DNA from: Adineta vaga
Lineage: Eukaryota > Animalia > Rotifera
Assembly: GCA_021613535.1 (NCBI GenBank)
Contig: CP075493.1
Coordinates: 8,618,001 to 8,682,000 of the forward strand
Reading direction: 5' to 3'
Length of the DNA stretch: 64,000 nt
Shown here: one piece after another, positions 8,528 through 17,400 of the stretch
How the letters are laid out: every line of letters starts with the position of its first letter
How positions within the stretch are numbered: position 1 is the first letter of the stretch
The notes under the pieces: model-generated
Database searches by the model: none
Told to the model about the DNA's origin: nothing
The model's input: only the letters and a program-made list of their open reading frames with translations
Made by a program: the position numbers and the translations under genes

Positions 8528-8950
8528 TCACATTAAATCTATTTTTTCCACTTTTATATCAACCATATCACCATAACCTTTTGTCAATACAGGAACATTT
8601 GAACTGGTTATAAATCGTATTTTTCCATCGGCAACAATTCGTACACGTACAGAATAATTGGATGATTTTTCAACATCTTTCTCATCATATTCAAGCGTGA
8701 ATGTGATTGGAAATGTTCGAATTTGATTTTCTAAAATTAATTTTGATATTGTATGAAATTTACGTACATATGGGCCATCTTGAGAAGCGATATCTGCAAT
8801 AGAACAAGACACGCCTATGAATAGAATTCATCGATATGAATTCTTACCTGATAATGTCATATCATCGAGATAAATAAGGATTTTATGATTATCATTAAGA
8901 ATTTCACTATGTTTTTCATAGTCAATCGTACCTTCAATACGTCTGACCAT
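8528..8950 (-). CDS. YbaY/YscW-like protein (bacterial lipoprotein family), 2 exons, no signal peptide
   Basis: MVRRIEGTIDY...|GVSCSIADIASQDGP...FPITFTLEYD...YSVRVRIVADGKIRFIT...PVLTKG..VDIKVE fits the YbaY pattern (D.S..DAP; P..F.L.YD; Y.V.ARI; FIT; PVLT.G). Intron 8815-8847. Confidence 0.75.
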
Positions 8951-10596
8951 TGTAAGCGCTGAAGATGATCGTTGAAATCTGAAATTAATAAAAATGCGAT
9001 TGAGTAAGATTTCGAAGGATAGATCGTATGTTCATTAGTATGTGTGTTACTTAGAGGAGGAGTTTTGAAAAGGAAACGGAAACTAATGTATATAGAAAGT
9101 GATTGTTTGTCTTTTTCTTTTTTACTCTACTGCGATAATCATCGATTACGGGGGAAAATGATGAATCTATCGTTTTTCTTTCTTTTTCATACAGAGAAAT
9201 TATAATGTCTAACATCGTCTACTCTCTTCTTTTATTTTATGACAAAAAAGAAAAAAAGATTCAAAAAGGAAAATCTATTTTTTTAACTAATCAAATGTTG
9301 AAAGTAATTGAGAAAAAAAACTCTTTTTTTTCTTCTTTTATTTAATTGATTCACGTCACTTTGAAGAATCTCTTATCATTATCTTTCGATCTGTCACTTC
9401 AGAAAGAAATCAATGAGCATAAAGTATGACAAGAGATATGCCAGTGGAAGATATTCTCATAATGAACTCATCAAGAAAATTCTGGAAATTACGCACTCAT
9501 ATTAACTTTAATTTTTTTCATCTATTTATACGATTCATATGTATGAAAATTTGATGATGTATTAAGAAGTTAAATAGATAAATTTGAAATGAATGAATCA
9601 TTGTGTATATTATCAACTTTCGATCGGGCTAGCTCATGACAACTCTAGTTAAGTTCTAATTAGAATCAGTCGAATATTTTTGCTTGTGAAAATTTCTATA
9701 TTTTTCGAAAAATCATTTGTTTTTTTATTGTCATGTATAAGAAAAATTTAATTGCATGCGAAAGTCATTTTTTCAACTTTCAATTTATTCGATTTATAAG
9801 ATACATTTATATTATGAATAGCCATAGTCAAAGAATCAAATGCATTGTCGACCTTGACTACATGATGAATCATCATTCAATTGTTCTTCTGTTTTGATCA
9901 AGTGAATCAGTGATTTTTATCTGTATTCGATATACATCGTGTTTGATTAAAAACGGATATTTTTTCTAGTTATCTCCATAAAAGATACCTACGTATCAAT
10001 GTTTATCTTTGTATAATTAAGAAAAAAGTTATTATCAAGCTCAAATCAATCCACCTCATTATTCATTAGCATTGAAAGAGCATATAGTAAGTACAGTATA
10101 GTTTCTTCAGATTGAATAAAAATAAGTTTTTTTTTTAGTTTTACAAAATAAACATAATAAACACTCGATGTCCGAACCTTAAGGGCATCCAACAAAAATA
10201 TGAGAACGACGAAAAACATATTTTGACAAAAACGAACTAGAATAGAATAGCGTAGATTTCTATCTTACAATGCAATGAGTTACCTCGTTATATAAAAGTA
10301 AATAATGACATCGTGTATAGAATCTCACACTTATCTTTGTTGATTTTGATATGAAATATAAATTATATTCATGAGTGTATGGGGATTCGCTTGCAAAAAA
10401 TAAGAGTGTGTGCAGTGACATACCTCGAAGTATAGCTTGTTATTTTGCCTATAAACATAGAAGTGTAGTTTTGTTTTTCGTATTGTTGTTAAGAATATAT
10501 ATCTTGACATTTACTATAACTGTTCAGTAGTATTATGTGTGATCATAATCTATTTTGAATAAGAAATGATATCTTCTAGACTTAATATATAGAATT

Positions 10597-11282
10597 ATGG
10601 AAGAACATGGGATGTTTATAGAAACAAATGTCGTAGAAAACGAACGAAGTGAACATGAAAACTATCTCCGTGCGGCTATTCAAGTAATAACAGAAGAGAA
10701 ATCTTGTTTTTTTCATTGATTGAATATATACATATTGTTTTTTAGTTAGCAGAAGATAATGTTGAACATAAACTTGGTGGTCCATTTGGTGGTAAGTATT
10801 TTGTTTCGAATTCGTATTTATTTCAAATATCATTTATTTGTTTTTAGCGGTTGTCTGTAAAGATGGAAAAATTATTGCTAAAGGTGCGAATCAAGTTGTT
10901 CCAAATAATGATCCAACAGCACATGCTGAAATGGTAGCAATTCGACTTGCTTGTCAAGAATTAAAGACACATAATTTAGAAGGCTGTGTTATTTACTCTT
11001 CATGTGAACCATGTGATGTGTTTAGGTGCTATTTATTGGGCACATCTTGATCATATTTATTTTGCACATTCAAAAGCAGATGCAAAAGAGAGTAAGAGAA
11101 TATTTTAAATAGAAAATAAATAAACTATTCGAATTTTTCTAGTTGGATTTGATGATCATTTTATTTATGAAGAATTAGCGCGTGAATTACATGAACGACG
11201 TGTTGGTGTTACTCAACTACTTAAAGATGAATCAAAAGCTTTTTCAATGTGGAAAGATTGTCAAGCTAAAGTTCATTATTAG
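10597..11282 (+). pseudogene. guaD: Guanine deaminase of the cytidine-deaminase-fold (Bacillus GuaD) type; 4 exons; frameshifted in this sequence
   Basis: YLRAAIQ|LAEDNV..GGPFG|AVVCKDG...NDPTAHAEMVAIRLAC...SSCEPC, then 2 nt missing at ~11015, then MCLGAIYWAHL...|IGFDDHFIYEE...W...KVHY*. Introns 10684-10745, 10792-10847, 11092-11142. Confidence 0.9.
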
Positions 11283-11367
11283 TTTGTAGTAATTTATCAT
11301 TTTTTTTTATTAATAAACGTAGAGCACAGAAAGAAAGATGTCTTTATTCAGAAAAGTTTTTTTTTCT

Positions 11368-11697
11368 CTATGATCCACGATAAGTACTATAACCAAATTT
11401 GTTTAATAAAAGTGGTACATGATAATGAGCAGTATCTTTCGTACAGAATTCAATTGTGACCGAAGGGAAGAAACCATCTGGCATATATGTTGAAACATCG
11501 AAGATAATTCGCCATCGGCCAGCTTGCCATTTATCTGCGGGAACTAAATCAAAAGCACGACCATCATTATTCGTATTTGTTGTTGTCGGCATTGATATCC
11601 ATTCTCCATCTATAAGATTTTCGACACGTACTGGTACATTAGCAGCTGGTCGACCGCAGGATAAATCCAAAATATGAGTTGTTAAAGTTTTAGTCAT
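11368..11697 (-). CDS. uraH: 5-hydroxyisourate hydrolase (transthyretin-like), intronless
   Basis: LTTHILD..GRPA, TNNDGR, FFP, HYHVPLLL..FGYSTYRGS C-terminal signature. Confidence 0.97.
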   Translation of the reverse strand: MTKTLTTHILDLSCGRPAANVPVRVENLIDGEWISMPTTTNTNNDGRAFDLVPADKWQAGRWRIIFDVSTYMPDGFFPSVTIEFCTKDTAHYHVPLLLNKFGYSTYRGS

Positions 11698-11766
11698 CTA
11701 GAAGTTTATTAAATAAAAAAAATTTCAAATGTTCTCGAAAACAAAAAAAAACATGTTTTTATCGTT

Positions 11767-12718
11767 TTAAAGTTTTGATGTGAGAGCAGTTTTTGTTGAT
11801 GATCGATTCATTGTACATTGAATATAACCATGAGGATCATCGATTGGCATAAAAATTTCATTTTTATTTTGTTCACCAAAACGAGTTAAATCGACAGGTA
11901 AACAATGAATATTTGGCATTGTTAAATGAATTTTATTGATGGATAGAACACGTTCTAAAACAAATTTACCCATAGCATGAAGAGTATGTTGAACACTTTC
12001 AGAAGCATGTTCAGCAAACATATCAAGCATTAATCCACGAATTTGTTGACGTGTTTTTTCGAAATCATGAATTGATGAAGTATCTTCATAATTCCATTTG
12101 GCTTGAATAGCCGTGCCGAACAGACGATCCGTCGCATCAGGTAACGTTGTTAATGAATCGCGATAAAAATTCGTAAAATTTGAATTTGCTGTTTTCATTA
12201 CTTTAAGATCTCGAAGACCGGAAATAATGGAAAATGCACCATGTCTTGAACGTTTGACAGCAGTAAAATGTACTTCATTGCTTGATTGTACAAATGATGT
12301 TGGATGACGAGCATTATTTGATGTAACTATATGCGACCATTCTTTACGTTCAACTTTAACTTGAGCACTAGCTATTTGAGCATGATGTTCAATTAGATAA
12401 TTGACAAGTTCTTTAGCAAAATCTTCAATTGCCGTTGCACGTGTTCGTTGAGCAATATAATAAACTTTAAAAGAAAACAAGAAAAAATTGTTTATCTTAT
12501 CATGAAATGAATACGTAAGTTTTACCAGTATTTTTCATTGTATCAGTTGGTAATACTTTGGAATTGTCGGCATCAACATAACTACTAAGAAAATCACCAT
12601 CGATAAGAACACGTACAGTCCATTCATCGAATGTGTTGCCATTGTATGGTGAACGACGTACTCGTACAAGACGAACACCTTCTTTACCATAACGATTTTC
12701 ACCTACACTTGCCATCAT
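11767..12718 (-). CDS. uox: Urate oxidase (cofactor-independent uricase), 2 exons, C-terminal PTS1 (SKL)
   Basis: NRYGKEGVRL, DNSKVLPTDTMKNTVY, GLRDLKVMKT, TTLP.ATDR, SESVQHTL, MPNIH, NEIFMPIDDPHGYI. Intron 12465-12525. Confidence 0.97.
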
Positions 12719-13767
12719 ATGTCTTTTTATTTCTTACTAGAAAAAAGAATGATATGAATATGTTTATTTATATCCAACGCATGCATATGATAGATTTCTT
12801 CTTTTCTCTCTTTCTATTGATAAGATAAAACGAAGAAATAACACGCAATATTTATTCGTTCTGCCCTTTTCTCTAAATAATGACTCGTTTTAAACTATCA
12901 GGTTAGATATACAATAAAATCTTTTTCTCATCATAATCTTAAAAGAATAGAAAAGACAAATTATAACCAGTGAAAATAGCTGTAGATTCGTAGGAAAGAA
13001 AAAAAGTCAATGTACCGAAAATGAATTAAGAAAAACAACATGTTCTAGTTGGCCTACTTACAAAAAAAACTTTAGAAATGCACATAAAGTTCACTTTTAG
13101 ATTAAGAAGAGATATGTTATATAATGGCAGTTGTTTCTTTGACGATAAATCCGAACGTTTGAGACTGAAAATGATCCTAACAAGATCACCCTATATGAGC
13201 TCCATAATTATTCAGTGACAAATGAAAATCAAGGTATTACTCTGATAGAACTACCACTGATTTATTTGAATTAATCAACGACCTACCTATTCGAACATTG
13301 AGTCGAATTACTACGAAATAATATCTTTATTTTGATGTCCTCTATTGTCATTTATGTATCTGTAAAATTACAGATAAAAACACATCATTCATAATGCCTA
13401 AAATTGATATGCTAGAAGATCATTTCGATCTTAATTTCATCATGTTGAAGTATTTTCTTGGTCAGATTATAAGTAGAGTAGGACAACAAGAAAGAACCTA
13501 GCGAACTCCAAGTTGTTTTATGTTACTTTACCAGTTGAATATTGAATTTATCTTTTATCTAACCCTCATTCATACCTACCTTTAAATATAAGATATTGCT
13601 GGCTTTTTTATAATTCCGAGAGAAAATAGTTTAGTACTATATGAAATTTGATTTGATGTTTTTGCGCATAATTAGTGATAGAATCACGGATTCTATTCGA
13701 AAAATACTTCATCAATACACTTGTGTACTTATGAAATAAAAAATAATGTTTTAAACTATATTATTTT

Positions 13768-14425: not shown

Positions 14426-17400
14426 TCAAGCAACTGATTCGTGTTCACTGTTATTTAAAGACGAAAGGGTGGCGGATTGGGCAATAGAACGTTTGATACT
14501 TGCATTTTGACGATCATATTTTTGAGAATAAAGCCAATCAGTTCTAGAAAAAGTTTTAAAAAATAAAATTGATTATGTTTTTTTTCATAAAACTATACAT
14601 ATGTGAGTACAAAGCAAAATACATACACACACACACAAACACCATAGTTCAGAAAAGAAAAAAAATGAAAAAGCTAATAAGCATTCTCGCAATATTAAAT
14701 GGTAGAAAATAGGCATGCGTGAAATCGATCAGGTATTTTTCATTTCTTGGTACGTTCATATTCCATACTTACAGATTTTAATTAACAGAAAAACCGTAAA
14801 AATCTTCTTCTCGTACGCCGTAAGTCATATCTGAATAAATATGACGAAAAGAATTAATTATACATCCGTCCTGTTCTATCTCTAAGGACGAGAACAATTC
14901 GATCGTTATTGTTTCATATGTGAAAATAACCTTGATTAGTAGATAGAGAGAAAGATAAGAGTCAAACAGAAAAGCATTATTATAGTTATTATTTATTGTC
15001 ATAATTAGGTTAAATCTTTTTATATTCCTCTACCGTTGTTTCTTTTCCTATTGAGTATGATGATTTTGTTTCTTCTCTAAAAGTAAGATATAACAATGTA
15101 AAAAAGAATCCGTATTGTATTCCTATCACCAAGATTTTATACAACAAATAAAAACAAAACCAAAGAGATGACACCGAAAAAAAGAAATCGTTTTTCCCAT
15201 CACAGACAACAGATATGATTATGCTACCTTTTTCTTTCTCTAATTCATTCTTGTGATTAGTTATGAATGAATATTATCTAGAGAAAGAAGAGTTATGTTT
15301 ATTTCTCATTAATATAATCTTTTTCGATGAAACTCAGTAGTAAGTAATCCCTGCAACTTACTGTTCTATTGCAACTGGAATTGAAAGACGATTGTTAGGA
15401 AATTGTCGTTCAAGTTCAGCAATAGTATATACATAATTGATTTTATGATAAAATTTGTTACTAAACAATGAGAAATACATAGACTAATCCAAGAGAGAGT
15501 AATGAGAATGAATTCTACCTAAAGAATGGTCTTGAAAGAGCAATAACAGTACGAAGCCATCGAGTTGGATGTACAACATAGACTGAACGAAGATTTTTAC
15601 GAAGTCTAAATATGATTGAATTTTTTTGTTTAAAAAAATTTTTATATCGAAAAAAAAATTTCCTTACCGAAAATTAACCATTTGATAACATTTACGAAGA
15701 AATTTCAAATCTGGTGTCCGATGTTTTGGTGTAGCACCATGAAAATAAACGAGAATATAATCATTTGTAACTAACTTGTCTAATTTATGATAAACATAAC
15801 TAAAACGAAATGATTGTAACCATGAATGAGAGAAATATAAAAAGAAATGAATTTACTAAAATAATTGGTCCATTATGTATCGATATTCTCTTAGACGATG
15901 ATCAGGTAACCAACAGCCATATATTGCAATGACAGCCGTTTGATGATCTTCTTGTAATGTTCCGGCTGAACTGATGACACATTTGAATGGTGTAATCGTT
16001 TTTGCATCAATATTAATAGGCGTATTATCAATGACACATGCAATCACATCCTGTACTTCATCAGAATCGACACCACTATCATCTTTCGATGTTGAACGAA
16101 GTAGAGCTTGAGAAGAAAAAGAAAAGAGAACTATTTTGATTACGGCATATAGACGGATATGTTAGTTTTTCATTAGAAAATATTGATGGGTAAATGAACG
16201 GAAATGAAGAAACATAGTTTCCTGAAATTGTCTCCATAAAGTAAAGAAATGATTCTTTTCTTTCTTTCTTTCTATTTATTTCAAGCTTGCGCACACGCAC
16301 AAACTAATTTCATTTACATCATTATGAATGAGTTGTTCTTCTCAGTAGAATTGATTAAGAACATATTCTTTTGCTTGTTTCTTGGTTTCATCTATCTTTG
16401 CTTTTCTATTCCTTTCGATTTCTACACCACTTGATTGTTTGTCGGCCGCTCTCTTTTCCCTTAACACTCTTCTATACCCTACGGCGTCACAAGAAGAACT
16501 TAATGTTTATGAACGAAGAAGAAAAGAAAAGAGAAAGCATAAGAGTAGGGATCTACTCATATTTCTAGCCCGTTTTTTGAAGAAGACTACCATGTTCTTT
16601 GTATGATTGAGTAGCGATGCGCTTATTTGAACTGACAAAGACACGCACATACATATATAGATATATATAAATATATTAGATCTTGTTCACAAAGCAAATC
16701 TCATTTTATCATTATTATTTTCCTAACTTAGTCACTATGGACACCAGTGAGGTATAGTTAAACATAGTGATTTTTTTTTCTAGCGGAGATTGATCTTTTT
16801 CTCTTTGCTTTTAGAGAAAAATAATCAATGGTGAACGATTTGAAAGAAGTAATGATAATAGTGCAACATTGAAAAAAACGCTACTACTTGGTTTTACACC
16901 CTTAGTTATTGCGATCGTGTTGTATATTAGCTTAAGTGCATGTATTCATCTATCACGATGTTATGCAAATTGGAAATTGAAAAAACAATTAGAAATTGTG
17001 CGATGTTCAGAGCAATGTTTGATTGTTTCGAATCCATCAATCGACGATTCTGACCAACAATCAACCCCTGAAGTGGTCTGATTTATCATGCAGAACAAAT
17101 ATACATCGATTTATTATCCATCAATGTGAATGTCATCGACTGGAAGACCGAATAGCGACGAGAATATCGCATGCTAAAACCTAATTCTGTTTCTCAGTTG
17201 TAGTAAGAGCTGGATTTGTGTGTTGACGTAGAAATTATCAGCTCAGCTGCAATTCTGTTTCTCGGTCTAATATGTTTTTTGCTGTTGTTGTTGTTGTTGT
17301 TATTATTATTATGATTATGATTATTATTACCATTATTGCCTTTTTTTTTCTTCTCTGCGTTTTCAACACTTCGTTAGGACGATCTAACAGTTTGTCAACT

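Follow-up and report, generated by a model that had tools for sequence, protein, structure and literature searches.

Horizontal gene acquisition by bdelloid rotifers is well known. Bdelloids are, to our knowledge, the animals with the most foreign genes, and we know of little documentation of how these genes are integrated into pathways. Here, we analyzed a 64,000-nucleotide stretch of the Adineta vaga genome (GCA_021613535.1, contig CP075493.1, positions 8,618,001 to 8,682,000 of the forward strand; hereafter the window), in which positions 10597-12718 hold three genes, for a GuaD-type guanine deaminase (guaD, + strand), a 5-hydroxyisourate (HIU) hydrolase or HIUase (uraH, - strand) and a uricase (- strand). 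We consider it likely that this bacterial-type trio was taken up horizontally in the Adineta-Rotaria ancestor and that its members now work as ordinary rotifer genes. Like the horizontally acquired genes of bdelloids in general, they have bacterial nearest relatives (in the case of uricase and guaD), spliceosomal introns, a host-like GC content, expression and conservation across genera; unlike these, they are three consecutive genes of one pathway and they lie mid-chromosome (C1:8.63 Mb, with contigs averaging ~17 Mb). A search of one literature library found no paper linking bdelloids or other rotifers with uricase or urate catabolism.

Several described systems resemble parts of this locus. 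The purine operons of Terriglobia (e.g. L009) have genes for a deaminase of the GuaD type, for HIU hydrolase and for a uricase of 282 aa that shares 50-53% identity with the rotifer enzyme, and uraH adjoins the uricase gene. In these operons, however, uraH precedes uricase and guaD lies 2-8 kb off, with genes for xanthine dehydrogenase (XDH), OHCU decarboxylase (which acts on the product of HIU hydrolase, OHCU) and allantoate degradation between; they have no introns and no SKL tail, their GC content is 55-60%, and their uraH and guaD are not the closest relatives of the rotifer genes. The Bacillus subtilis guanine deaminase GuaD (1WKQ/1TIY) shares its fold, zinc motifs and C-terminal Tyr with the rotifer deaminase, and the B. 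subtilis pucL-pucM pair has the same uricase-then-HIUase order, which a first-pass annotation, made from the letters of the window, had offered as a sign of bacterial ancestry. That argument turned out to be weak, as the closest bacterial uricases (~80 loci) have uraH then uricase; PucL-type uricases are distant (51-54 bits) and fused to OHCU decarboxylase, and the likeness in order is probably coincidental. Among eukaryotes, the yeast DAL cluster also gathers genes of purine and allantoin catabolism, which were clustered by relocation (Wong and Wolfe 2005, cited in PMC13751858); the yeast genes are native whereas the rotifer trio is foreign, and the rotifer cluster covers earlier steps of the pathway. 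Finally, uricase and uraH resemble the spliced-leader (SL) trans-spliced operons of nematodes in being a same-strand pair with a short spacer and a poly(A) signal that precedes the splice acceptor of the downstream gene, but differ in that no SL-bearing read was seen for uricase-uraH, the comparison here being made from assembled contigs.

We found that the trio is compact, spliced and shared among bdelloids. The three enzymes of one pathway occupy 2.1 kb with gaps of 85 nt (11283-11367) between guaD and uraH and 69 nt between uraH and uricase, exactly as first annotated, and Pfam and NCBIfam models confirm the three families. One DNA run (X1) and three RNA runs (X11, X12 and X14), from four studies, were aligned over positions 10500-12800. 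All four coding introns (62, 56 and 51 nt in guaD, and 61 nt in the uricase gene) were skipped as GT..AG joints in each of the three RNA runs, which bears out the three guaD introns and one uricase intron predicted earlier, and guaD has an additional intron in its 5′ untranslated region (5′UTR). Spliced transcripts of orthologues of the trio are also present in other bdelloids, one of which (contig L131) has the uricase intron removed. The assembly comprises 100.8 Mb in six contigs, with the window at C1:8.62-8.68 Mb, and the flanking genes are of animal type (mitochondrial carrier, acyl-CoA dehydrogenase and CRAL_TRIO). The GC content of the trio is 33-38% in a window of 31%; in the genes of the bacterial relatives it is 55-56%.

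The closest proteins to the trio are those of Adineta and Rotaria, at 65-90% identity. The order uricase, uraH, convergent guaD is common to A. steineri (L006), R. sordida (L007/L008) and an 821-kb environmental bdelloid contig (L109), with CRAL_TRIO upstream of the trio in A. steineri and R. sordida. Moreover, every coding intron, including that of uricase, has an identical position in A. steineri, R. sordida and the environmental contig, and the first coding exon of guaD is kept in all three. Because gene order and intron positions are common to Adinetidae and Philodinidae, the trio and its introns predate the split of these two families. Contamination was considered and is ruled out by the spliced introns and the shared synteny. 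The view of the first-pass annotation that this is integrated DNA therefore holds, on spliced introns, metazoan neighbors, host-level GC content and synteny in four bdelloid sequences, and the linkage of the three genes is present in related species.

As assembled, the window carries a single G at 11015 between the CEPC and MCLG residues of guaD, which shifts the reading frame and brings in a stop at 11048. This one-base spacer inside the PCxxC zinc motif, with a stop 33 nt later, would fit a frameshifted guaD pseudogene in a decaying trio. However, all four runs, DNA and RNA, read CCA at this position, which restores PCPMC, and the same codon is intact in A. steineri, R. sordida, the environmental contig and a spliced transcript contig. 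Because all the runs and the orthologues read the intact codon, the frameshift is an assembly error of two bases (C1:8629015) and not a pseudogene. Also at odds with decay, the guaD transcript is present and spliced, none of its 4 coding variants among the runs changes an amino acid, and its dN/dS is ~0.11-0.26, leaving the pseudogene reading extremely unlikely. Across the three genes, the runs show 20 coding variants, 17 of them synonymous, and comparison with A. steineri and R. sordida gives dN/dS values of 0.08-0.30. The trio is under purifying selection. Gene predictors will truncate, miscall or mis-split guaD in this assembly on account of the two-base error.

Database searches were made exon by exon. 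The uricase gene has two coding exons and a product of ~297 aa; exon 1 matched PF01014 at 38 bits and exon 2 at 138 bits in two stretches, and exon 2 alone reached 217.4 bits on TIGR03383 (cut-off 168.4). Every one of the 55 invariant columns in an alignment of bdelloid and bacterial uricases is kept, and a genome search identified the window copy as the only uricase of the genome. Among 5.8 billion proteins searched, the top 47 uricase matches were bdelloid-like, and next came 282-aa proteins at 49-54% identity (~237-265 bits), one of which sits in a complete purine-catabolism operon on a 4-Mb bacterial contig. When prokaryotes were scanned with one genome for each species, 80 uricase loci at 45-53% identity were returned, nearly all in Acidobacteriota (Terriglobia). 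Scores were far lower on uricases of solved structure: a reconstructed ancestral mammalian enzyme gave 133 bits, the zebrafish enzyme 112 bits, the Aspergillus enzyme 104 bits and Bacillus enzymes 51-54 bits. A quick tree united the bdelloid uricases in one clade (support 100, stem ~1.0 change per site) beside or within the Terriglobia group. Since this is a quick tree with its root on one very long branch, we claim proximity to Terriglobia and not nesting among them. Two uricase haplotypes were also seen among the runs (12088-12202), with six differences within 55 nt (12118-12172), all synonymous.

The C-terminus of the uricase carries a classic peroxisomal signal. SKL or SKI is present in 44 of the 47 bdelloid-like copies, on a tail of ~12 residues, while the bacterial relatives stop soon after the last conserved Arg and have no such tail; the bdelloid uricases have gained it. 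Because of this gained tail, the uricase is probably peroxisomal.

It could be argued that uricase, HIU hydrolase or both are vertically inherited, divergent metazoan genes, given that both enzymes are common in animals, that SKL is a eukaryotic signal, and that the rotifer HIUase scores similarly on the zebrafish (67 bits) and B. subtilis (68 bits) enzymes. Yet the scores of the uricase on the Terriglobia enzymes are roughly double those on the solved vertebrate and fungal ones, and the protein does not group with the metazoan enzymes of solved structure, the placement that the first-pass annotation had named as fatal to a foreign origin. In addition, no named non-bdelloid metazoan occurs among the top 120 matches of either protein, the SKL signal stands on a tail that bacterial relatives lack, as expected of a later addition, and the genome has no second, metazoan-type copy. 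We consider vertical descent very unlikely, and a bacterial origin of the uricase well supported.

For guaD, the A. steineri protein (P0405) and a spliced transcript contig (L134) stood for the full-length sequence. The A. steineri orthologue aligned end to end with 1WKQ, the guanine deaminase of B. subtilis (179.8 bits, E 4e-52), and the motifs GGPFG, HAE, PCPMC, IYWA and GFDD as well as the terminal Tyr are kept. In the paper on the 1WKQ structure, GFDD and this Tyr are reported to have a role in substrate binding. These results agree with the earlier assignment to the Bacillus GuaD type, a cytidine deaminase (CDA)-fold enzyme with HAE and PCxxC motifs, the PCPMC form of the latter being intact in the reads. 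Another base, a nucleoside or a tRNA might be the substrate instead of guanine, in view of the nearest bacterial proteins being named only "nucleoside deaminase" by NCBI, the Sphingobacteriaceae homologue lying outside purine clusters, and no NCBIfam model for the subfamily being matched. Against this, the A. steineri orthologue reached only 104 bits against guanosine deaminase and 80 bits against TadA, its score on the TadA model was 73 bits (cut-off 150), the GFDD motif and C-terminal Tyr are retained, and the 52%-identical Terriglobia homologue adjoins a xanthine permease in a purine operon. A non-guanine substrate is therefore unlikely in our view.

We then considered where guaD came from. 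A search with the exon-3 region of a bdelloid orthologue returned bdelloids first and then Sphingobacteriaceae (Mucilaginibacter and Pedobacter) at 74-76% identity over 81 aa. Over its full length, the A. steineri protein shares 58% identity with a Mucilaginibacter protein and 52% with the guaD product of Terriglobia operons. In trees, the Terriglobia guaD genes formed a clade without bdelloids (100/96), and the bdelloid sequences were nested among Sphingobacteriaceae-like ones. The guaD of Sphingobacteriaceae is solitary, outside any purine cluster. A bacterial origin of guaD is well supported.

The product of uraH scored 103.7 bits on TIGR02962 (cut-off 87.45), starts with ...THILD, which holds the N-terminal catalytic His, and ends with YRGS. 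It is the only HIU hydrolase of the genome, and its N-terminus, judged by eye, does not fit the motif of the type 2 peroxisomal targeting signal (PTS2). The best matches reached 52-57% identity (~105-110 bits) and include marine bacteria, in which uraH adjoins a gene for a membrane (PuuD-type) urate oxidase. The maxima were 102 bits among the sampled Bacteroidota and 93 bits among the sampled Acidobacteriota. In the tree, the bdelloid sequences fell outside the clade of Terriglobia cluster genes (99/95), among various bacteria and one oomycete in a part that lacks resolution. A foreign origin of uraH is likely.

Taken together, these results uphold the horizontally acquired module of the first-pass annotation for uricase and guaD, but not in the same way for uraH, for which bacteria and the oomycete score alike (~93-110 bits). 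Look-ups in the ESM Atlas gave only family-level matches in mixed taxa, which do not bear on origin. Several points weigh against horizontal acquisition of the trio as we read it. The trees held no invertebrate or monogonont uricase or HIUase, so that the metazoan comparison consists of solved vertebrate structures and the top 120 matches; the uricase tree is a quick one, rooted as described above; the lineage nearest to the uricase donor is only ~50% identical, and the true donor is unsampled; the oomycete HIUase scores as high as the bacterial ones, and no single source lineage emerges for uraH; and the enzyme activities, localization and physiological role are read from sequence.

The three genes may have arrived together or separately. 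One possibility is that a piece of a purine operon with guaD, uraH and uricase entered once, followed by loss of the genes in between and a change in gene order. Nearly all of the Terriglobia loci with the closest uricases have uraH directly upstream of uricase, and ~60 of the 80 have a GuaD-type gene within 2-8 kb of it; as these loci carry all three genes, a suitable donor cluster exists in nature. Approximately unbiased (AU) tests leave a Terriglobia placement unrejected, both for guaD (beside the Terriglobia cluster genes, or outside the Sphingobacteriaceae-like group; p 0.33) and for uraH (beside the Terriglobia cluster genes; p 0.14), and chance adjacency of three functionally linked foreign genes is improbable. 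However, the bacterial arrangement is a divergent guaD upstream of uraH and then uricase, while that of the rotifers is uricase, uraH and a convergent guaD. Rotifer uraH is only 39% identical to the uraH of the Terriglobia operons, compared with 52-57% to that of other bacteria, and the A. steineri guaD product scored 150-186 bits on the Terriglobia proteins, compared with 219-224 bits on those of Sphingobacteriaceae. No sampled genome was best for all three genes: the five Acidobacteriota genomes with the best uraH have a poorer uricase (39-43% identity) and guaD (38%), and of 301 Bacteroidota genomes sampled evenly, only one has a PF01014 uricase at all (33% identity). The three different nearest bacterial lineages lead us to lean against a simple block transfer, which we hold possible but doubtful. 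We favor over it, at somewhat short of even confidence, two or three separate acquisitions that later became adjacent. The first-pass annotation had left transfer as a block and assembly after transfer side by side; the difference in nearest lineages tilts this choice, and the AU tests reject neither.

We further searched the genome for the remaining steps of the pathway. XDH and OHCU decarboxylase, reported earlier as absent from the window, are indeed absent from it and are both encoded elsewhere in the genome. Of the native enzymes that had been proposed for a search, an amidohydrolase-type guanine deaminase and OHCU decarboxylase were found, but no second uricase or HIUase. The amidohydrolase-type enzyme is encoded at C1:12505715-12507004 (L098) by an intronless gene for 456 aa (TIGR02967, 400 bits, cut-off 375). 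Thus, the contrast drawn earlier between the CDA-fold enzyme of this locus and the amidohydrolase type of animals is right for the locus but not for the genome, which holds both, and the CDA-fold guaD is an addition and not the sole guanine deaminase. Two tandem intronless open reading frames (ORFs) of ~473-484 aa (C4:4701086-4701562 and C4:4704967-4705443; L096 and L097) fuse a polysaccharide-deacetylase domain (PuuE-type allantoinase) to OHCU decarboxylase and supply the third step of uricolysis. An allantoicase lies at C3:12333799-12334719 (L103, L104), in an open frame of 378 aa. Several XDH-like loci are present and split into exons; a molybdopterin-binding XDH-type domain was also seen in an uninterrupted 732-aa frame at C6:12205419-12206129 (L100).

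From these predictions, the genome appears to encode a route from guanine through xanthine, urate, HIU, OHCU and allantoin to allantoate, with two steps from the window locus alone. The GuaD-type zinc deaminase would convert guanine to xanthine, and the cofactor-free, probably peroxisomal uricase would convert urate to 5-hydroxyisourate. The HIU hydrolase, encoded 69 nt downstream, would turn this unstable compound into OHCU, and the OHCU decarboxylase/PuuE-type allantoinase fusion and the allantoicase, encoded elsewhere, would lead onward towards urea and ureidoglycolate. Given that the only uricase and HIU hydrolase are the window copies, urate breakdown appears to depend at least partly on acquired genes. 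We infer a role of the trio in purine nitrogen salvage or urate clearance.

The arrangement of uricase and uraH raises the question of an operon. The two genes lie on the same strand with a 69-nt spacer that has a poly(A) signal upstream and a 3′ splice acceptor downstream, which is an SL-operon-like layout. The succession of AATAAA, a short pyrimidine run and AG|ATG is kept in six bdelloid sequences, although the spacer varies in sequence and in length (51-122 nt; 51-106 nt in four of the six). Length polymorphisms (+A and +AAAAC) were also observed in this spacer in some runs, at 11714 and 11737. Both here and in another bdelloid, RNA contigs that lack the uricase intron extend across the spacer into uraH. 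As contig assembly can fuse transcripts that overlap, uricase and uraH are only candidates for co-transcription. More than half of bdelloid transcripts receive a 23-nt spliced leader (PMC1925144), and rotifer operons were unreported as of 2021 (PMC7986045). The contig L134, a Logan RNA contig from another bdelloid, starts one base before the uraH ATG, at the conserved acceptor; such a start is expected of a graph branch between spliced-leader and unspliced forms and is weak evidence for them. Separately, one contig of run X11 joins a conserved coding exon of the upstream CRAL_TRIO gene (ending ...IPVAIE; donor 15362, GTAAGT at 15361) to the uricase 5′UTR acceptor at 12736 (- strand), and this one contig from one run suggests read-through transcription from CRAL_TRIO into uricase. 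That separately acquired foreign genes were clustered and that uricase and uraH, perhaps with CRAL_TRIO, form a polycistronic unit resolved by spliced-leader trans-splicing is conceivable, but on the whole we think it rather unlikely.

The coordinates of the features of the locus are collected in Table 1. Beyond guaD, an ORF of 94 aa (8528-8812, - strand) matched PF09619 (YscW, a family of bacterial type III secretion lipoprotein chaperones; E 1e-11). This family is also represented beyond guaD in A. steineri (L006, 11217-11646) and the environmental contig (L109, 9568-9807). The YscW-like ORF is possibly one more foreign gene that accompanies the trio.

Table 1. Features of the guaD-uraH-uricase locus (positions in the window)
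Feature	Position	Strand	Basis and remarks
3′ end of guaD 5′UTR exon	10057..10086	+	Matched by loose RNA-contig ends at 10580 (X11, X12, X14); donor GTAAGT at 10087
guaD 5′UTR intron, GT..AG	10087..10579	+	Loose RNA-contig ends match 10057-10086
guaD coding sequence, whole span	10597..11282	+	
guaD coding exon 1	10597..10683	+	29-codon N-terminal extension and start of first helix; joint 10683/10746 in three RNA runs
guaD coding exon 2	10746..10791	+	Holds GGPFG; RNA joints and orthologue conservation
guaD coding exon 3	10848..11091	+	HAE and PCxxC zinc motifs; PF00383, E 1.2e-15; RNA joints
Assembly error in guaD	11015	+	G in window, CCA (Pro codon of PCPMC) in reads
guaD coding exon 4	11143..11282	+	GFDD and C-terminal Tyr (...VHY); stop 11280-11282; AATAAA 11312-11317
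uraH, 5-hydroxyisourate hydrolase	11368..11697	-	109 aa, one coding exon; TIGR02962
uricase-uraH spacer	11698..11766	-	AATAAA (11710-11705), pyrimidine run, AG acceptor flush with uraH ATG
uricase coding exon 2	11767..12464	-	Ends with SKL (type 1 peroxisomal targeting signal, PTS1); TIGR03383
uricase intron, 61 nt, phase 1	12465..12525	-	Joint in X11, X12 and X14
uricase exon 1	12526..12736	-	Coding 12718-12526; 5′UTR 12736-12719, starting at AG acceptor (12738-12737)

Overall, the trio is real, though fairly typical as an instance of foreign genes working in bdelloids; what goes beyond the routine is a possibly mosaic pathway cluster, an acquired peroxisomal tail and a candidate operon. Three enzymes of one pathway have been kept together since before Adineta and Rotaria split, and have gained introns, the base composition of the host and a peroxisomal signal. 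If the operon is real, it would be the first described in rotifers, and it would be composed of foreign genes. If the donors of the three genes differed, the locus would be a case of selection assembling foreign pathway genes in an animal, in parallel to the DAL cluster of yeast.

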